Source: Rebecca billardiae RCC1528 (Eukaryota; Protista; Haptophyta). Taken from it: a stretch of DNA of 64,000 bases. Below are positions 4,154 to 51,716 of the stretch, piece after piece. The stretch is taken from the NCBI GenBank assembly GCA_965240325.2, contig OZ251244.1:806001-870000 (forward strand). Reading direction: 5' to 3'. The notes beneath the pieces were generated by a model that saw only the letters and a program-made list of their open reading frames with translations, was not told the DNA's origin and searched no databases. Both the position numbers and the translations under genes were made by a program. The first letter of the stretch is position 1. Each line of letters starts with the position of its first letter.

Positions 4154-6094
4154 TAGCCTGGTCCATCCCGATTTTCGCCAGTGAAAAAGCCTTTTCGGAT
4201 TTTGGGCGCCTGATTTCTCCCGATTTTTCTCGTCGCTCGTCGCGCTCGTCAAAAATCGCCACCGGCCGTCCGACGGCTCGCCGCGACGAAGGTCGGGAAG
4301 GGGCTCGAGAGCCTCGACTGGACGACTGCGCCGCCTGATGTCAGGTGTAGTGCTGGACACATCGTTCGGGTGCCCCGGTGGTGTGCGTGCACACCTTGAG
4401 CGACATGTCTGCGTTGCTTCCGCCGCCCGCGGTCCGTCGCCAGGTCGACTTCTCGCATGACGGCGCGCGTCGAACGCTCACCTGCTGGGTTGCGCGGCGC
4501 CTTCGAGACGGGCCACCTCGGGTAATATGCGGGCGACGCGACGGCTCGTGTGGGCCACCGCCTACCCCTAGCATGTACTCGATGCCACCACCAGCGTTGG
4601 GCGCGCTGCGCATCGCCAACGCTTCATCCGGCCAGTCCCGTCACGTTTGCGCATGGGTCGTCCTGAGCGGCGGCTGTCGATTTGTGCTCCTCGTGGAGCT
4701 GAATGACGGGCTGGTGGCGAGCAGGATGGCTCGCCTTGCGGGGCTGGGTGTGTACAGTCGCAGTGTAGTGGCTGCGGGCTGACTCCCATCGCCTGGGTGC
4801 TGCTTTACCGTCATGGCCTTTGCTGCGAGCACAAGGTCGAGGATCGTACCGCGGTCTGCGAGGCAGAGTCGACGGAGTCGTCGCTTGAAGATGGTTGAGA
4901 GCGCTCATACGTCTTCCTTGGTGTCGTGCGGCTACTCCAGCACGCAAGGCTCGCGCTCTGGCACGTGTTTGGTGTCCATGGGTGGCACATTGTGCCATTC
5001 GGGTGGCTCGGAAGCACGTGCTCGGGTGTCTTTCCCGTTTACGCGCGGTGGGCCAAGTCACCACGCACGGCCAGAGCATGTCATGGCACGCAGAGGGTGC
5101 CCATGAACGATCCCCACCCCGGTGGTGGCCGTAGGCGCACTCGAAGCGGTCGCATCGTCACCCGCGGATCACATCAGTCCGCCGTTGAGGCTGTCGGGCG
5201 AGCAAAGACGTGCGATCTGACCCTTGGACGGGCAGCTAGAATCGCGATTATGCCTCATCTAAGGACGCACATGTCGTTGTTGTAGGCAGTACTGATGCCC
5301 CAAGTGAAAGGGCGGGCGTGGCACGCGACTTGACAGCTTGAATGACTCGATGCACGCCGCCATGGACACGCGATCCGGATCCATTGCGAACCTGCCGTGT
5401 GGCTCACGGCGGCGCGCGTTGTGCCGCAGATTGGCCAGTTGCCACGCAGGAGATGGTCTCCAGACCAGGTCCAGCACCTGACCGACTGCCGCACGCCTGG
5501 CCGGGTGGGAGTCCGGCCCTCTTCTTGTCTGCAGGAGTGCGCGGAAGGCCAGGCGGAGCCTCGTCCGACCACTGCACCCCGAGCGCCGCACTAATCGTGC
5601 AGCCTGGGACAGCTACCCACCTATGGCGAATATGTAACGACATAGTGGCATTTTAATTATACAGGTCCAGAACTCATACTTATGTGGGTACATTTTCCAT
5701 AATATGCGGGTATAAATGGGTATTATAGTCGATCTTGCAGTAGTTGAGTACGGCCACTTGCGCACAGACCACAGCCCATCCTAATGGCCTGTACCAGGGT
5801 TCATGCTCGCCTCGACGTACGCCAATAAGTAAGTTCGTGATGCGTTTGGGCTCATTTCGGCTAAGTACTTACCCACATTCGGACTGACGATTCTCTATGT
5901 GTCCGTAGTTGTCCGCGGCGCGCGCGCGCACGCTCACGACGGGCCACGGATGCGATTTTTAGGCCGAAACTTTTGCTGCGCCCGGGCTGGGCCCATTTGT
6001 TACGCTGTTTCCGGGTGTGAGCGCGTGCCTAGGGGCCCGCGTTCATTTGGCGATAAAATCCCCGAAAGTGCTCCAGTGCGTTTGGACCAGGCTA
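4154..6094. mobile_element. Non-autonomous TIR DNA transposon (element A), 12-bp TIR, 7-bp TSD
   Basis: TAGCCTGGTCCA (4154-4165) and its exact reverse complement TGGACCAGGCTA (6083-6094), flanked by direct repeat CATGCAC (4147-4153 and 6095-6101). Lower GC than genes; no convincing ORF. Confidence 0.8.
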
Positions 6095-44881: not shown

Positions 44882-45053
44882 CTAGACGAGAGAGCGCGTA
44901 GAGAGTCATACGCGGCGGCGGATCGATCGTCATCAGACTCAGTCAGAGCGGCGCGCGCGGCGCCCGCCGCAGCGAATCAGCTCCGATCCGCCCGCCGCCG
45001 CGCGCGGCGCCGATCTGATCCCGCCTGGATCGGAGCGCGTTCGTTCGTCAGCA

Positions 45054-45054
<1 letters not shown>

Positions 45055-45110
<56 letters not shown>
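45055..45110. repeat. (TA)28 microsatellite
   Basis: Perfect TA run about 90 bp from the transposon left TIR. Confidence 0.95.
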
Positions 45111-45114
<4 letters not shown>

Positions 45115-45755
45115 TCACCTGCGCGCTGCGCTTCACGACGACTACTACAAGCTGCTTGACGACGATATCGTCGTCGTCAGCAATGATAAGATGATGATCC
45201 ACAGCAACGATTTCTTTTTTAAAGCGGCCGTTAAGGAAACTCCAACAAATTGATTTTCGGCCGTTAACGGCTCAACCCGGGCGTCCGGCCACAATCCCGA
45301 GAGCCTCCTCGCGCCGCTCGGACCAACCGACGGTCGTCCAGAGCTCCGACGCGAAGTTGAAAGTCCCGGTGCGCGCGTGCGCCGTGCGTGCGCGTGTGGC
45401 GGCGTCCACGTCGCCGCTGCGCCACCGGTGCTCTAATCGCGGGTGTTCCCCAACCTATCCCCCACCTGCCCCGCACCCGCTCCGCGTCCCGACCCGCCAC
45501 GCCGATCTACTTTGCTAGGTCTGTTCGTAACACGGTGCGAATCTGCGCCCGCCTGCACGCCGCCGCGCGCGGGGATGCAGGAAGTGTATGGAGGGGCGCG
45601 GAGTTTGTATTCAGGCGGCGGGTTACTCGTGATCCACGCACATGCTCAGCGGGAACGCTTACTTTTGCATGGGTGACCGGGAATTTGCATCAGACTAACT
45701 TGCTGCGGCTGCGCCCGGCGGCGGCCGCGCGGGACCGCGCTCGCCGCGCGCAGCA

Positions 45756-46613
45756 ATGACGACGGCTGTGCTTACCGTGGGCAAGGGCAAGCGTTCCTGC
45801 GCGAAGCCGAAGAAGGTCAAGCTGCAGCGGAAGGGCGGCTACGGCATCGGGCGCAAGGTCTCTGCCGCATCTGTGCGGCGGCGCATGGCCGCGGCGGCCG
45901 CGGAGAAGGCGGCTGAGCACGAGACGCTCATGCTGCGCGCGCGCGAGGCGGCGAGCGAGGTGGACCACTCGATCATGCCGAACGAGAACTACCTGGCGGA
46001 GGTCAAGCGCAAGGTCAACAACTTCGTCGCCATCAAGGGCAGCCGGAAGAAGGGCAACCTGCTGCGCAAGGCCAAGCTGGCGCTGTTCCCGCGTGACGCC
46101 CTCTACTCGCCGATGTTCACCTCGCTCGACGACCAGGGCGTCGTGCACGAGACGCGAGAGAAGGACCGCACGCGGCGCACCGTGAGCTCGTACCAGCCCG
46201 AGCGCATCTCGACGTGGCTCAACCTGGGCATGCGCCGCGTCCCGAAGCCGCTGCGGGCGAACGCGCTCGGCGGCGCGCGCACGGACCGGCACCTCTCGGC
46301 GATCAACACGGTGCACTCGCTCTCGATCGAGCACACCGAGATGCATCGGCTCGATCCGGACGGCGCGTACCAGCAGTTCGCGCACGTGCGCGTGGGCGTG
46401 ATCTCGCTCAACGCGCAGGGCGGCCTGCACGCGCCACAGGACGCGCAGGGCGGCGTGAGCGTCGACGCCGAGCGCTACGCGCTGATGCAGCCATGGCGCT
46501 TCAAGAAGGAGAAGGGGCGCGCTGACGTGAGCGGCGAGCTGCTCAAGGTGTGCGCGCAGGGCGTCTCGATGCGCCGCGGCGGAGGCGGGGCTGGCGGCGC
46601 ACGCCGTCTGTGA
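45756..46613 (+). CDS. Transposon ORF1, Lys/Arg-rich; probably exon 1 of the transposase
   Basis: 285-codon ORF with strong coding bias. Host-type donor AAG|GTGTGCGCGC at 46548 can splice in frame to CCGCGCGCAG (46750) or TTCTCAG (46897). Confidence 0.7.
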   Translation: MTTAVLTVGKGKRSCAKPKKVKLQRKGGYGIGRKVSAASVRRRMAAAAAEKAAEHETLMLRAREAASEVDHSIMPNENYLAEVKRKVNNFVAIKGSRKKGNLLRKAKLALFPRDALYSPMFTSLDDQGVVHETREKDRTRRTVSSYQPERISTWLNLGMRRVPKPLRANALGGARTDRHLSAINTVHSLSIEHTEMHRLDPDGAYQQFAHVRVGVISLNAQGGLHAPQDAQGGVSVDAERYALMQPWRFKKEKGRADVSGELLKVCAQGVSMRRGGGGAGGARRL

Positions 46614-49600
46614 CGAAGGGCCCGTCGGAGCTCACGGGCGCGCCGCCGGCAGCGCCTGCCGCGGCGCCCGCCGCGGCGGCACCGGCGGCGCCGCCCGAGT
46701 CCGACGTCTCACGGCGCAAGCGCGCGGACTGGAAAGCGCGCCGCGCGCAGCGCGAGCAGCTGACCGCCACTCGCCGAGCAGCGAGCAGCGCCCGATGGCG
46801 TCGCGCGCCAGCTGGTGACGGCGCGGTCGCGCCGCATCCCCCCCTCGATCTCTCTGCCCTCGATCCCACGCATGCCCATCTGCATTCTCATTCTCAGCCT
46901 CTCTCGCATGTTCCAGTCCTCGGTCTCACGCCCGGCCTCTGCGCCGACGCGCCATCCGATCCATCGTCCGCCGCCGTGATGCCCTACGCGGTCGCGGACA
47001 CCCAGCCGCTGCCTCCGTTGGGGCCGCCGCCGCTGCCGTCGCTTCCGCCACCGCCGCAGCTGCCGTCGGCGCCTCCGCACCTGCCTCCGCCGCTCGTGCA
47101 GCCGCCGCAGCCGCGGCCGCGGCCGCGGCCGCGGCCGCAGCCGCAGCCGCTGTCCTCGCCGCATGATGCCGCCCGTCCACCGACCGCGCGCGCGCTCGCT
47201 CTCCTTCGAGCTGATGGCGGCGAGGCGGCGGCATCAGCCGCCGCCGCCGCCGCCGATTTGTCTCCCGCCGTCGTCGCTGCCCGCTTCTCGTCTCTTCCCG
47301 CTCACGCCGACCACCTCGTCTTCTCGCCCGCCACTACCAACGCCTCCTCCGCCTTGAGCTTTCCTGCTGCCGCTGCGCCGTCGCCCGCGGTCACGCGCAG
47401 CGCCTCCCGCCAGCCCGCGCCGCCACTCCTCCTCGCTGGCGCGGCGGCGCAGCCGTTCGTCGGTGGGTCGGCGGAAGAGCTGCTGCCGCCGAGGTCACCT
47501 GCCGTCGCCTCGCCCGCCTTCATGTCGCCGCCGCCTGCCGTGCTGCTCTCGGCCGCGCCCACCCGCCAGCGGCCTCTCACGCGCTCGGCTGGCAGCGTGG
47601 CGCCGACGCCCGAGGCAGAGGCGGACGAGCAGACAGCACGGGGTCGAAGGCGCATGGCCGAGCTGCAGCACGTGGCCGAGCTCGAGCAGCAGTTGCGGCG
47701 CTCGCACAGCACGCGCAGCGTCCCTTCCGAGCTCGAGCTCACCTCGCTGCGCACACGTGTGACCGAGCTCGAGCACTTCAACGGCGAGCTCGAGCGCGAG
47801 CGCGACGACGCGGTGCGGCAGCGCGAGGACATCGTCAACTCGGCCGCCGTCGATCTCGAGCCGGTTCTCGACGTGGTGATCGCCGCCGTCAAGCTCGAGT
47901 GCGAGAACATCGAGCGCGAGGCCCTCGACCGGATCGCCGCCGCGCGCGCCGCCGCTGCTGCCGCGGAGAGGCGCGCTGTGCTCGCCGGGTACCGCGCCGG
48001 GCACAGCGCGGATGCGCGCACCCGCCACGACGCCGAGGCGGAGCAGGCGCAGGCGAAGCTTCGGCGCGATCTCGAAGAGGCGAACGCGCGGGCCGCAGCT
48101 GCGCAGCGCGCCGCCGACGCGCAGCGCGATCGGGCCCTCGAGTTGGAGCGCCGCCTCACCGCGACCGAGCACATCGCCGCTGACGCGCTGAGCGGCGTCG
48201 AGCACGAGCTCGCGGCTGCGCTGCACGCGCAGCAGCTGCTCGAGCAGCAGTGCGCGCACGCCCAGTCGCTCTGCGACGAGCAGCAGTCGCAGCTTGTCGA
48301 GCTCAAGCGCGACAAGGACGCCGCGCGCAAGCGCGCCGACCGAGCCGCCGGCAAGTTCGAGCACCTCGCCGAGCTGAACGGGCTGGACGGCGCTCATCGG
48401 CAGCGCGCTCAGCGCCCATCTCTCTCGGTCTCGAGCAACGCGTGCCGCAAGCGCAGGCGGGGGGAGGCGGACCATATCGAGCACATCCTGCGTGGCACGC
48501 CCGACGACGTGATGGACCTCGTGCTGCACGAGATGCTCGAGGGCGCAGACGACGGCTCGCGCAAGCCGTGGGCGAGGCACGCCTACCTCCAGCAGCGCCG
48601 CGGCGCAGTGGGCGTTGTGCGCGAGATTCAATCTCATCAGACGCACCACGACGTCGCCGGCTACCTCGTCTCGAAGAACGTCACGGACGCGCAGTTCGAC
48701 ACGTGGCGCGAGTGGGTGGGGAAGGAGATCCACCCGGTGACGGGCGAGCACTCGGCTCGCACCGTCTTCCGCGGCGGCTTCGGCCGCGAGCCGATCCGCC
48801 ACCCGATCCCGCCGCCGGCGGCTGGCTCTCGAGAGGTCGCGCAGCGCGATCGCGAGCACGCGGGCGCGGGCGTGCTCATGATCGGCAGCGAGTCGGCGGC
48901 GCGGCCGTGGGCGCAGGCCGTGCACGCCGTGCTGGATCGCTCGGAGCGCAACGGCAAGTCCGCGCGCCCGCGCGGGCATCCGCACGTCCTCCTCCTCTCG
49001 GCGGACGCGGGCAACACGGCTCACTCGCGCACGGCCACGATCGCCATCGTGCGCAACGGCTGGGGCGTCAACTACGGCGCGCTCGCGTCGTCAGAGGCGA
49101 TCGCCATCTCGGAGCGGCCGGACTCGGACATGTCCGAGTTATGGAGTGCGCACGCCGACGCGATCAATGACGTGATCCGGAGCGGCCTGCTTCCGCCGCG
49201 ACCGACGCCGCCTGCTGCCGCCACCGCACGTGTGGCCGGCGCGGCCGGCGGCGCGGCCGCGGCCGTCACAGCCGGCGCGGCCGGCGGCGCGGGCCGCGGC
49301 GAGGCCCGCGGCGCGGCCGGCGGCGCGGCCGGCGGCACGGCCGGCGGCACGGCCGGCGGCACGGGCGGCGCGGGCGGCGCGGGCGGCAGCGGCAGCGGCG
49401 TGGCTGGCGGCACCGCCGGCGCTGGCGTCCGCGCGGCCGGCGGCGCGGCCGGCGGCGCGGCTGGTAACGCGGGCGCGGGCGCTGGCGGCGGCGCGGGCGG
49501 CGCGGGCGGCGCGGGCGGCAGCGGCAGCGGCAGCGGCGTGGCTGGCGGCACCGCCGGCGCTGGCGTCCGCGCGGCCGGTGGCGCGGCCGGCGGCGCGGCG

Positions 49601-51295
49601 AGCAGCGCGGCTGGCAACCCGAGCGCGGGCACGGCCGGCGGCGCGGCCGCCGCGGCCGCCGCGGCCGCCGCGGCCGCCGCGGCCGGCGGCGCGGCCGGCG
49701 CGGCCGGCGCGGCCGGCGCGGCCGGCGCTGCCGGCGCGGCGGGCGGCGCGGCCGGCGGCGGTTTTGGCGGCGGCGGCGAGGCGGCCGACTACGCGGAGGA
49801 GCAGAAGGCCATCATCACGTACACCGGCGATTATGTCAACCTTGCCAGCCTCGCCGGCCAGGGCTCGCACAACGTCTCGCCGCTCCGCTTCAACGTGTGG
49901 GCGGTCAAGGAGGCGGGCGCGGACGGCGGCTCGCCTCAGTGGCGGCTGCGCACGTACAAGCGCGCGCGCGCGCTGTGCCACGCGGACCCGGGCGTGACGT
50001 GCCCTGCGTGCAAGGTCACGCCTGCCGACCAGGGCGAGTGCGACGCCGAGATGACCAAGCGCCGCCGCCTTCTCGCCGACGACTCGAAGGACGCCGAGCG
50101 CATCGTCGACCAGAAGCTGCACGAGAACCAGTGGCTGCTACCGCAGCTGGAGCTCGAGCACGTCAACTACTTCCCCGGCATCATGCACTTCAAGCACGAC
50201 ACTTTCAAGCCGGTGCTGTCGGCGCTGTGGAGGGAGGTGGACGAGCTGTACGGCCGCGACGCGCCGCTCACCAAGTACGACCTGATCGTCCTGTTCAAGA
50301 ACGCGGGCGTGCCTGTGCGAGTGCCCAAGCGGCGCACGCGCACCAACGAGATCGGCGTGCCCGACCTCCGCGGCGACGGCATCTCGCTGCTGCGCACGCA
50401 CGCGGTCTTCTGGGCGTTGGTGCAGGTCGTGTGGAAGATCGACGCGGATCTCGACGGCGCGAGCAGCGCGGGCGCGGCGGACAGCGGCGACGAGGACGCG
50501 CGCATCTCGGACATGCAGGACGAGGAGGAGCGCGAGATGATGGACGAGATCGGCTTTGACGACGAGGCGCAGTTGAAGGCCGAGATCGCGGACATGCCGC
50601 GCATGGCACTCTTCTGCCGCCTGCTCATGCTCACGTGGCAGCTGCACGACCTCGTCTCCTCGCGCGGCTACACGGACGATGACGATGGCCGCGCGAAGCG
50701 TGCGGACGAGGTTGAGGCAGCCGCGACGGCGTGGGTCGAGGCGCTCGACCTGTTCGTCCTCAAGCCGGTCACCTCGCAGTACAAGACGATCGCGCGGTTC
50801 GTCTTGCCTCTGCTGATCAGGCGGTGGGGCCACCTCGTGCAGCTCGCGGACGAGCAGGTGCAGGAGCACTTCGTGCAGGTGACCAAGCGGGCGATGCCGC
50901 TCGTGAACGCGCGCAAGTCGCTCGACTCGTTCGTCCGCGAGTATGCCGAGGGGAAGAAGTCGACGGTGCAGCCGCACATCTCGACGGCCGCGCAGCTCCT
51001 GCGCCGCGTGTCGCTTGCGACGTGGGCGGAGGAGGAGTTCGGCGACAAGGTGCGGCGGCTCTGGCTGAAGAAGGAGGGCAAGCGGCAGCGCGAATGGCAG
51101 CGCAAGGCGAAGGCCGGCGCGCACGACCTGGTCGACGAGTACATCGCGGCGCGCAAGCTCGTGCGCGAGGAGGCTGGGCTTCCGGAGGAGGACTTGTCGG
51201 CACTCAAGAGCAAATTGAGGGCGGCGGCGCGCTCGGCCTCGGCGACGGTGAGCGACGGCGCGGATGTCGCGCGCGACGGCAGCGGGGCTGGGTAG
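46550..51295 (+). CDS. RAG1/Transib/Chapaev-like DDE transposase
   Basis: Ordered motifs matching the RAG1/Transib core: AGYLVSKNVTDAQFDTWR, LLLSADAG (D, nt 49004), TYTGDYVNL (D, nt 49829), PGIMHFK, LRGDGISLL, VTSQYKTIARFVLPLLIRRWGHLVQLADEQVQEHF (E, nt ~50864), NARKS; preceded by Pro-rich and coiled-coil regions. Confidence 0.8.
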   Translation: MRAGRLDAPRRRRGWRRTPSVTKGPSELTGAPPAAPAAAPAAAAPAAPPESDVSRRKRADWKARRAQREQLTATRRAASSARWRRAPAGDGAVAPHPPLDLSALDPTHAHLHSHSQPLSHVPVLGLTPGLCADAPSDPSSAAVMPYAVADTQPLPPLGPPPLPSLPPPPQLPSAPPHLPPPLVQPPQPRPRPRPRPQPQPLSSPHDAARPPTARALALLRADGGEAAASAAAAAADLSPAVVAARFSSLPAHADHLVFSPATTNASSALSFPAAAAPSPAVTRSASRQPAPPLLLAGAAAQPFVGGSAEELLPPRSPAVASPAFMSPPPAVLLSAAPTRQRPLTRSAGSVAPTPEAEADEQTARGRRRMAELQHVAELEQQLRRSHSTRSVPSELELTSLRTRVTELEHFNGELERERDDAVRQREDIVNSAAVDLEPVLDVVIAAVKLECENIEREALDRIAAARAAAAAAERRAVLAGYRAGHSADARTRHDAEAEQAQAKLRRDLEEANARAAAAQRAADAQRDRALELERRLTATEHIAADALSGVEHELAAALHAQQLLEQQCAHAQSLCDEQQSQLVELKRDKDAARKRADRAAGKFEHLAELNGLDGAHRQRAQRPSLSVSSNACRKRRRGEADHIEHILRGTPDDVMDLVLHEMLEGADDGSRKPWARHAYLQQRRGAVGVVREIQSHQTHHDVAGYLVSKNVTDAQFDTWREWVGKEIHPVTGEHSARTVFRGGFGREPIRHPIPPPAAGSREVAQRDREHAGAGVLMIGSESAARPWAQAVHAVLDRSERNGKSARPRGHPHVLLLSADAGNTAHSRTATIAIVRNGWGVNYGALASSEAIAISERPDSDMSELWSAHADAINDVIRSGLLPPRPTPPAAATARVAGAAGGAAAAVTAGAAGGAGRGEARGAAGGAAGGTAGGTAGGTGGAGGAGGSGSGVAGGTAGAGVRAAGGAAGGAAGNAGAGAGGGAGGAGGAGGSGSGSGVAGGTAGAGVRAAGGAAGGAASSAAGNPSAGTAGGAAAAAAAAAAAAAAGGAAGAAGAAGAAGAAGAAGGAAGGGFGGGGEAADYAEEQKAIITYTGDYVNLASLAGQGSHNVSPLRFNVWAVKEAGADGGSPQWRLRTYKRARALCHADPGVTCPACKVTPADQGECDAEMTKRRRLLADDSKDAERIVDQKLHENQWLLPQLELEHVNYFPGIMHFKHDTFKPVLSALWREVDELYGRDAPLTKYDLIVLFKNAGVPVRVPKRRTRTNEIGVPDLRGDGISLLRTHAVFWALVQVVWKIDADLDGASSAGAADSGDEDARISDMQDEEEREMMDEIGFDDEAQLKAEIADMPRMALFCRLLMLTWQLHDLVSSRGYTDDDDGRAKRADEVEAAATAWVEALDLFVLKPVTSQYKTIARFVLPLLIRRWGHLVQLADEQVQEHFVQVTKRAMPLVNARKSLDSFVREYAEGKKSTVQPHISTAAQLLRRVSLATWAEEEFGDKVRRLWLKKEGKRQREWQRKAKAGAHDLVDEYIAARKLVREEAGLPEEDLSALKSKLRAAARSASATVSDGADVARDGSGAG

Positions 51296-51716
51296 CGGGA
51301 ATCAGGCAGCTGACGGTTAGGGCATGCAGGGGGGACTAGTCGCGCGCGCGCGCCGCCCGCTGGGCGCGCGCGCGCAGCGCATAGTAATTTTCCGTAAAAT
51401 AATCCGGCCGATGGACACGCTAACGGCCGCTTTAAAAAAGAAGTCGTTGCTGTGTCGCGAGTAATAACGCTCGTCCAGTCGTCGTGACCGCCGCACTGAC
51501 CGCGGCGCCGGACTTATTACAGCAGTGGGTCCGAACCGAAGCCGGAGCCTCATCGTCATCAGAATATAAATATAATGGCATCGCGTCAATAATGCGCAGA
51601 ATGCTGCTTCGCCGCGGACGACACTGACTCACTGACACTGAGGCAGCCTGAGGCTGCCAGGCCGAACTGAGCCCGAATCAGGCCGATCACGCGTATAATA
51701 TAACGGTTAATAAGTC

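Follow-up and report, generated by a model that had tools for sequence, protein, structure and literature searches.

RAG1 is the V(D)J recombination enzyme and is derived from Transib-type transposases, while most of what is known on the earlier history of its fold comes from sequence motifs that CACTA-type elements have in common with it. Here we ask what kind of element lies at a locus of the haptophyte alga Rebecca billardiae RCC1528 (Haptophyta), which a preliminary description had read as a recent RAG1/Transib-like transposon outside animals, and how close to RAG1 it really stands. The DNA examined (the window) is a stretch of 64,000 nt (64 kb; GCA_965240325.2, contig OZ251244.1, forward strand, 806,001-870,000), and all coordinates below are positions within this window, not contig positions. 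The host alga is very GC-rich, and the DNA here is 74% GC.

The element, its termini, and its relatives

The element spans 45200-51454 (∼6.3 kb) and looks intact. It ends in the 34-bp terminal inverted repeats (TIRs) described previously: the left TIR is at 45200-45233 (forward strand, with the inner end ..GCGGCCGTTA) and the right TIR at 51421-51454 (reverse strand); both start with CACAGCA, and 33 of their 34 positions are identical, the single mismatch being T/C at position 12. This TIR pattern is found at these two sites only within the 64 kb, with 0 expected (100 shuffles). A TC dinucleotide flanks the element on both sides (45198-45199 and 51455-51456), again as reported before, and is a candidate 2-bp target site duplication (TSD): it is the sole sequence common to the left flank (...GATGATC, before CACAG) and the right flank (TCGCGAG, behind CTGTG), although a 2-bp flank match alone arises by chance in 1 of 16 cases. 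A second copy of CGGCCGTTAA (45258-45267, forward strand) lies 33 bp past the copy internal to the TIR (45225-45234), and may be a transposase-binding motif (motif family D4).

Other copies share these ends. Two contigs from a sequencing run (the X1 contigs) part from the window sequence exactly behind 51454, and a related element, L007 (72% protein identity), conserves the TIR and ends at CTGTG, so the right end is backed by two X1 copies and L007; L005 and L007 are independent insertions that, with the X1 contigs, confirm the termini. Multiple copies with common termini and differing flanks (the two X1 contigs, L002, and L005) and deletion derivatives of the element were found, and one sequencing run contains the element (∼0.39 of sampled words). 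Searching a metagenome collection with the TIR gave one 25-nt chance match (L006, an unrelated contig with 48% GC), and the same search of viral contigs found nothing.

An exhaustive phmmer search produced 31 homologues, with E values down to 3e-92, from Pavlovales sp. CCMP2436, MMETSP (marine protist) transcripts, and JGI/ENA marine metagenomes; word-indexed searches with part of ORF2 and with alignment A2 returned nothing, and low-complexity words probably swamped A2. The family is very probably an undescribed one from haptophyte-like marine algae. In L002, a complete relative, the two ORFs are laid out as here, and the 33-bp TIRs, which begin with CACTGC and end in ..CGTTA, are perfect; the flanks of L002 share A only, with no duplication of at least 2 bp, and this metagenome contig could be chimeric. 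Three related elements (L002, L005, and L007) share a CAC[A/T]G terminus, L002 and L005 starting with CACTGCT and L007 with CACAGCA, and the constant part of the termini across relatives is CAC.G only. No convincing TIRs were found at the Pavlovales loci L003 and L004; a CACCGCG pair there (23/30) overlaps a gene start, and was judged unreliable.

Coding regions

The uninterrupted ∼4.7-kb frame of the preliminary description is ORF2 (46550-51295, forward strand; 1581 codons), a mechanical stop-to-stop frame with a GTG start, whose first ATG is at codon 144. It shares 64 nt, read in the -1 frame, with ORF1 (45756-46613, forward strand; 285 aa, ATG start, basic N-terminus), which had been overlooked. 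There is a real coding signal (third-position GC of 0.86-0.98), reaching 0.92-0.98 in the ORF1 frame, and is clear in ORF2 from ∼47300 to 51200. Stops are rare at such GC content, and the window has many long overlapping ORFs on both strands, as would be expected if the open frame were a chance product of 74% GC DNA and the inverted repeat fortuitous; we give this explanation practically no weight, since it is refuted by the strong third-position periodicity, the 31 homologues, the confident fold of the model (see below), and the TIR conserved in L007, and no shuffled sequence fits the TIR pattern. The element is a real, young-looking TIR transposon, as first proposed.

ORF1 is a module conserved in the family: the homologue P0045 is 50% identical to it, and it aligns with ORF1 of L002 and with the N-termini of the Pavlovales models P0025 and P0029. 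Pfam, the ESM Atlas, and a fold search gave no match for ORF1 (its AF2 model has a pLDDT of 62, a best PDB Z of 5.2, and Atlas TM-scores of at most 0.36). It is certainly not a RAG2-like propeller, and the element has no RAG2-like ORF, in agreement with the earlier account. Immediately past the ORF1 stop, the element and L001 have a short basic motif in common. ORF1 may code for an accessory protein, or else be the exon for the N-terminus of the transposase.

ORF2 begins with a Pro/Ala-rich low-complexity stretch without codon periodicity (aa 1-368, 46550-47653), which may or may not be coding, followed from Met369 by a coiled-coil-like region rich in Ala, Arg, Glu, and Leu (aa 369-620, 47654-48409); a counterpart of the latter precedes the core in P0035, P0025, P0029, and P0024, and P0035 begins at this point. 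The pre-RNase H region and the first half of an RNase H fold (aa 751-887, 48800-49210; pLDDT 70-95) align with RAG1 from residue 483-490 onward and contain D819 (in SADAG, 49004-49006; conserved in 16/16), which is predicted to be catalytic. A 197-aa Ala/Gly tract (aa 880-1076, 49187-49777), built of 9/12-nt tandem repeats and modelled at pLDDT <30, interrupts the RNase H fold at a loop, at a position where P0006 has 57 aa and other members have a Cys-rich segment. The second half of the fold, a ZnC2/ZnH2-like insertion, and the C-terminal domain follow (aa 1077-1504, 49778-51061; pLDDT mostly 75-95), aligned up to RAG1 residue 1007. They carry the predicted catalytic residues D1094 (49829-49831; 17/19) and E1435 (50852-50854; 25/26) and the predicted zinc ligands C1151/C1154 (50000-50011; 20/23 and 20/22) and H1213/H1216 (50186-50197; 20/24 and 19/25); R1282 is conserved in 26/26 sequences of the family alignment. 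The ordered series of RAG1-like motifs in the preliminary description thus holds for SADAG, TGDYVNL, GIMHFKH, LRGDGISLLR, and ADEQVQEH, which occur in this order with key residues conserved in the family, but not for the NBD-like RPSLSVSS..RKRRR and AGYLVSKN.., which lie in a region neither conserved nor confidently modelled and are unsupported.

Some of these features would also suit a relic that is complete in structure but no longer active, and that could at most be moved in trans: the RNase H fold contains the repeat-expansion tract, the two ORFs are in different frames, deletion derivatives are present, and in one diverged X1 copy the substitutions are spread 11/11/11 over the codon positions, as expected for decay. 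On the other hand, the TIRs differ at only 1 of 34 positions, both ORFs are open, and every conserved catalytic and zinc residue is kept; the frame offset is ancestral and not a lesion, because the 50%-identical relative has the same offset at its ORF1 stop. We therefore regard a relic as rather unlikely, and read the element as probably a structurally intact cut-and-paste DNA transposon that was recently mobile.

Predicted structure of the transposase

Sequence searches did not connect the family to known transposases. Pfam models (including PF26100/26101/26104/12940) matched none of 42 family members at E≤10; Transposase_21, DUF1280, DUF4218, and Transpos_assoc likewise matched no member, and Pfam returned nothing for the whole of ORF2 or its parts. 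PHMMER against PDB sequences gave antibody-linker low-complexity matches only, with no RAG1 or Transib among them, and of the family profiles compared with the PDB, A1 retrieved nothing relevant and A5 no match at all, RAG1 and Transib again being absent. Since sequence ties the family to none of those described, its placement rests on predicted structure, namely a template-free AF2 model from an input of 41 newly found homologues (pTM 0.61, mean pLDDT 62.8, with a confident core).

The best structural matches were RAG1, BbRAGL, and HzTransib, the proteins that the preliminary description had named for a structural comparison. In the VIA comparison, residues 121-874 of the model were superposed on RAG1 486-1007 (Z 16.8, rmsd 4.0 Å, 422 residues), and BbRAGL and HzTransib followed with Z of 15.3 and 14.5; the best other fold reached about 8.2-8.3. 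Among the 50 PDB matches listed by Foldseek, almost all, including the top 20, were RAG1, HzTransib, or BbRAGL, and a Foldseek-independent structure search returned the same top six, then P element (8.2), ISCth4 (7.3), and Hermes (7.0). The hAT, P, IS256-like, and Tn5 superfamilies are ruled out by these values (Z 6.7-8.2, versus 16.8 for RAG1). In the model, D819 is in strand 182-192, D1094 comes right behind strand 456-463, and E1435 lies where helix 806-821 starts. ESM feature searches of both halves gave clusters of RAG1 domains, ordered as expected (0.88-0.90), and DUF1280 as well. The predicted architecture of the transposase core is thus that of RAG1/Transib (pre-RNase H, RNase H, ZnC2, ZnH2, and C-terminal domain).

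Proposed mechanism

The ORF2 product would be a transposase whose low-complexity/coiled-coil N-terminus is followed by a pre-RNase H region, by an RNase H fold that a ZnC2/ZnH2-type insertion divides, and by a C-terminal domain, and in which D819, D1094, and E1435 would catalyse the reaction and C1151/C1154 and H1213/H1216 would bind zinc, as the model suggests. It would bind the 34-bp TIRs, with the CAC end and the inner CGGCCGTTA motif as its probable contacts, and nick at the CAC terminus. RAG and Transib cleave via a hairpin on flanking DNA, and by analogy the element would probably be released in the same way and integrate with a short stagger of about 2 bp.

Placement and comparison with known systems

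The CMCT clade of DDE transposons comprises EnSpm/CACTA, Mirage, Chapaev, Transib, Plavaka, ESTA, as well as Lanisha, has members in plants, fungi, and animals, and is marked by 5′-CA..TG-3′ termini and TSDs of 2-5 bp (Kojima, 2025; PMC12730594). The family described here very probably falls in this clade, judging from the predicted fold, from D819, D1094, C1151, C1154, and E1435, which are conserved across the family, and from the CACAG...CTGTG ends; the TC on both sides is weak on its own, and the H(2)H spacing of the His pair departs from the H(3-4)H published for CMCT. The wider clade is the defensible placement: the same fold is found in predicted CACTA-type and DUF1280 clusters, so that the element can be placed in CMCT but cannot be called Transib. 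The earlier claim of a RAG1-related transposase therefore stands for the predicted fold and not for a specific RAG1/Transib affiliation.

Is the likeness to RAG1 simply the fold common to the clade, in a member of CMC proper (Mirage-, Chapaev-, or EnSpm-like)? In the ESM Atlas fold search, our model fitted a cluster that contains DUF1280 (TM 0.67, by row) and clusters of Transposase_21 (0.39-0.50) about as well as it fitted the RAG1 clusters, all being predicted models, and the 2-bp flank match is within the CMC range of TSDs (2-4 bp). CACTA elements have a two-module coding layout, which ORF1 and ORF2 recall. Like CACTA/EnSpm, moreover, the element has CAC termini and a repeated motif near its end. 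However, its terminus is CACAG (or CACTG in relatives) and not CACTA, its TSD is not 3 bp, and none of the CMC Pfam models matches a family member, leaving a likeness at the fold level only, where TM-scores do not part CMC from RAG1. CMC proper is thus a possible but doubtful home for the family.

Genuine, if highly divergent, membership of the Transib superfamily, from which RAG1 arose, appears still less probable. In its favor, RAG1, BbRAGL, and HzTransib match the whole core from pre-RNase H to C-terminal domain (383-425 aligned residues), the ESM feature searches agree, the residue order D...D...CxxC...HxxH...E is that of RAG1/Transib, and the CAC ends begin with a heptamer, CACAGCA, that resembles CACAATG/CACAGTG (5/7 of CACAGTG). 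To our knowledge, structures have been solved for no CMCT members other than RAG1, RAGL, and Transib, which leaves a PDB search unable to favor another CMCT lineage, and a RAG1-type core fold, being shared with CMC, is not diagnostic of the Transib superfamily. Identity to these proteins is only ∼10-12%, no grouping by sequence similarity was found even at E 10 (Pfam RAG1) or with PDB profiles, and there is no RAG2-like partner. Nor is there a 5-bp TSD; TSD length varies within one Transib lineage (5 bp, 3 bp, and TA; 10.64898/2026.08.26.747230), and this absence thus weakens membership without excluding it. The conserved ORF1 and the long coiled coil are foreign to Transib, and the large loop insertion and the H(2)H spacing of the conserved His pair (in MHxxH) also differ from RAG1/Transib.

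We tentatively propose, with a confidence just short of even, that the family is a separate deep CMCT lineage, of superfamily rank like Transib, ESTA, and Lanisha, confined to haptophyte-like algae, whose own features would be a conserved accessory ORF1, a coiled coil for oligomerisation, and a frame offset of ancestral origin. If so, it could help to root the split between RAG1/Transib and CMC, and could show ancestral features of RAG1 such as zinc-site geometry or hairpin chemistry. The enzyme of the element, compact and possibly active, could also serve to probe whether cleavage through hairpins goes back to the origin of the whole clade. The element itself extends a known transposon group by a branch in algae and is not a new kind of element, its RAG1-like predicted core, CAC ends, and apparent 2-bp duplication widening the CMCT host range. 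The earlier "outside animals" is less striking than it sounds, given that the clade already occurs in plants and fungi; the surprise is moderate, since the clade is widely known and ESTA of fungi, RAG1-like only by HHpred, was already described with 2-bp duplications (PMC12730594). Compared with the described CMCT lineages, the family differs in lacking matches to their Pfam models, in a candidate TSD of TC and not TA, and in its haptophyte-like host, and it alone has ORF1 and the coiled coil.

Terminal repeats, related copies and insertion surroundings

The element spans 45200-51454 of the window (GC content 62-80% in 2-kb bins) and is bounded by two 34-bp terminal inverted repeats (TIRs), at 45200-45233 on the forward strand and 51421-51454 on the reverse strand; both start with CACAGCA, and they differ at a single position (33/34 identical). 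We found no further match to the TIR pattern elsewhere in the 64-kb window, and none in shuffled sequences (0/100). The sequences abutting the element, GATGATC on the left and TCGCGAG on the right, have only TC in common. The preliminary description had reported these features (34-bp TIRs with one mismatch, the CACAGCA start, the long open frame and the TC/TC flanks) accurately. At the left end, CGGCCGTTAA is present twice.

A complete relative of 5957 bp was identified in a metagenome contig (L002). Its TIRs are perfect over 33 bp, start with CACTGC and end with GACGTTA; two TIR features are constant across the family, CAC.GC at the tip and, some 30 bp further in, CGTTA. The flanks of L002 (a metagenome contig of a repeat, which may be chimeric) lack any duplication of at least 2 bp, and a target site duplication (TSD) of about 2 bp for the family is weakly supported. 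L002 encodes an ORF1 homologue of 296 aa, and its ORF2 is broken by one clean GT..AG intron (about 165 nt, 4790-4955; QAFD, then gtaagc..cgcag, then EFE), which the window copy does not have, so intron presence is variable within the family.

Copies not ending at these TIRs had been named in the preliminary description as evidence that would count against it; instead, several independent sequences stop at the same terminus. L005, from a second sample, has the same right end as L002 followed by a different flank. L007 (NCBI GCA_046766215.1; 72% protein identity) carries a terminal TIR that is identical to the window TIR at 30 of 34 positions, and its similarity to the window ends exactly at CTGTG. 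In X1, the one public sequencing run with the element, some contig pieces are identical to the window, one copy is about 8% diverged, another carries a deletion that brings 49935 next to 50817, and a further two contigs leave the window sequence exactly behind 51454. The ends shared by L005, L007 and the X1 contigs indicate that the termini are real and the family is multi-copy. L007 also contains (1086-2081) an internally deleted derivative, in which the coiled-coil part runs straight into the C-terminal 200 residues of the transposase; the right TIR is kept. A 25-nt exact TIR match in L006 (966-990), an unrelated metagenome contig with 48% GC, was rejected as a chance match; it shows that 25-mers can match by chance in the metagenome collection.

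Family members are located in AT-rich, microsatellite-like DNA (window 45030-45199; L002 122-160 and 400-443; L007 2243-2290, its right flank), and the genomes around these surroundings are very GC-rich. The left flank ends with AATGATAAGATGATGATC in the window and with AATGATAATATCATCATCA in L002, and both have a (TA)n run 100-300 bp upstream of the element. The AT-rich surroundings may reflect a target preference.

Coding regions

The stop-free frame between the TIRs (ORF2, 46550-51295, forward strand, 1581 codons) was delimited mechanically from stop to stop; it starts with GTG, and its first Met is codon 144. We identified an additional gene, ORF1 (45756-46613, forward strand), absent from the preliminary description, which starts with ATG and encodes 285 aa in a frame different from that of ORF2. 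Third-codon-position GC is 0.92-0.98 in the ORF1 frame (45800-46550) and 0.86-0.98 in the ORF2 frame (about 47300-51200); between 46550 and 47300 GC is uniformly high and this signal is uninformative.

ORF2 starts with a Pro/Ala-rich region (aa 1-368) and a coiled-coil-like region rich in Ala, Arg, Glu and Leu (aa 369-620); a coiled coil upstream of the core was found again in four long family members. Two conserved blocks follow (aa 622-880 and 1077-1581), separated by a 197-aa Ala/Gly tract (aa 880-1076, window 49187-49777) derived from 9/12-nt tandem repeats. Only the window copy has this tract; the homologous protein P0006 has 57 residues there. Other members have a Cys-rich segment (CC..C.C..C..C.C) at this site, which in the RNase H fold follows the first helix and precedes the fourth strand.

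Conservation of ORF1 extends to the homologous protein P0045 (50% identity), to the ORF1 of L002 and to the N-terminal 260-300 residues of the two Pavlovales gene models (see below). Searches of ORF1 against Pfam, the ESM Atlas and structures gave no identifying match, and its structure model (pLDDT 62) reached a best Z of 5.2 and TM of at most 0.36; a RAG2-like identity was rejected. The window and L001 (a 50%-identical relative) share the C-terminal residues of ORF1 (GGARRL, then TGA) and also a basic motif in the -1 frame past this stop (overlap of the ORF1 stop and the -1-frame ORF2 at 46550-46613 in the window; compared stretch 1620-1814 in L001). At the stop, L001 has an overlapping ATG (TTATGACA) and the window has GTG. 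In L002, about 430 nt, including an AT-rich, stop-filled stretch, lie between the two modules, and in the Pavlovales gene models the modules are linked via predicted introns. The ORF1/ORF2 boundary is ancestral and is solved differently from locus to locus; the link could be made by frameshift, reinitiation or splicing.

Homologues and conserved residues

Neither ORF1 nor any part of ORF2 matched Pfam, and a search of PDB sequences with ORF2 returned low-complexity noise only. When 1.84 billion representatives were searched exhaustively by phmmer with aa 1077-1581, 31 proteins were recovered (E-values 3e-92 to 3e-4), none containing a Pfam domain. They come from Pavlovales sp. CCMP2436 (two gene models, KAJ1620815.1 and KAJ1628803.1), one cluster of MMETSP transcripts, JGI and ENA metagenome contigs, and one more NCBI assembly; the MMETSP transcripts among them show that at least one marine protist transcribes the family.

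Conserved motifs were read from one family alignment (A2) and residues were counted in another (A3). The acidic residues are D819 in S.DAG (conserved in 16/16), D1094 in TGD..NL (17/19), and E1435 and E1439 in NEQ.QE (25/26 and 24/27). The putative zinc-site residues, encoded at 49979-50197, are H1144 (19/21), C1151 and C1154 in CP.C (CPAC in the window; 20/23 and 20/22), and H1213 and H1216 in MH..H (MHFKH in the window; 20/24 and 19/25). R1282 is conserved in 26/26.

Predicted fold of the ORF2 core

AlphaFold2, run without templates on aa 631-1581 with 41 homologues, gave a model with a pTM of 0.61; its pLDDT was mostly 70-95 at aa 770-887 and 1080-1560, and its quality was poor over the Ala/Gly tract and aa 631-766. 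In a Foldseek search of the PDB, the top 20 and nearly all of the best 50 matches were RAG1, HzTransib or BbRAGL (best E 0.011, probability 1.0; TM by target at most 0.51). VIA-align gave Z 16.8 for RAG1 (rmsd 4.0 Å over 422 residues, model 121-874 on RAG1 486-1007), 15.3 for BbRAGL and 14.5 for HzTransib (383/480 residues), and at best 8.3 for any other structure. When VIA-align was run on 48,161 representatives, independently of Foldseek, the top six were unchanged, followed by P element (8.2), ISCth4 (7.3), Hermes (7.0), Tn5 (6.7) and retroviral integrase cores (about 6.2), the last covering model residues 173/182 to 872, a span reaching from the strand with D819 to the helix with E1435. 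Strand 182-192 of the model contains D819, D1094 comes right after strand 456-463, and E1435 starts helix 806-821. Structure prediction and search, one of the checks proposed in the preliminary description, put no unrelated DDE family on top.

Activity of the window copy

Several features speak for an active copy: the near-identical TIRs (33/34), the open ORF1 and ORF2, the retention of all conserved residues predicted to be catalytic or zinc-binding, and the existence of window-identical contigs beside diverged and deleted copies. Against it we count the repeat-expansion tract that replaces the Cys-rich segment within the RNase H fold, the differing frames of ORF1 and ORF2, and neutral evolution in one diverged copy.

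Placement among known transposons

To our knowledge, no members of the wider CMCT clade (CACTA/EnSpm-Mirage-Chapaev-Transib) of DDE transposons other than RAG1, RAGL and Transib have solved structures. In a fold search of the ESM Atlas, the model matched several groups with overlapping TM-scores (by row): RAG1 clusters (0.43-0.72), a Mucoromycota cluster with DUF1280 in 16% of members (0.67), Transposase_21 (CACTA) clusters (0.39-0.50) and eukaryotic clusters without annotation (0.46-0.59). ESM feature searches with both halves returned RAG1 domains in the correct order and DUF1280 (0.88-0.91), which we treat as leads only.

The CMCT clade has been defined to include EnSpm/CACTA, Mirage, Chapaev, Transib, Plavaka, ESTA, Lanisha and RAG1 (Kojima 2025, PMC12730594); ESTA elements, described from fungi, make TA duplications and are RAG1-like by HHpred only (PMC12730594). 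TSDs are 5 bp in canonical Transib and 2-4 bp in CMC elements (EnSpm/CACTA, Mirage and Chapaev), and one Transib lineage varies between 5 bp, 3 bp and TA (2026 preprint, 10.64898/2026.08.26.747230). Our family fits the definition of the clade apart from the H(2)H spacing of its His pair, and was negative in the sequence-based tests for every named lineage; we therefore place it in CMCT and leave its position inside the clade unassigned. Of the RAG1/Transib-like transposon originally proposed, the RAG1-like predicted fold and motifs stand, but membership in Transib does not (all sequence tests fail), nor do two of the N-terminal motif matches. The element represents an algal lineage that is new within an already known clade.
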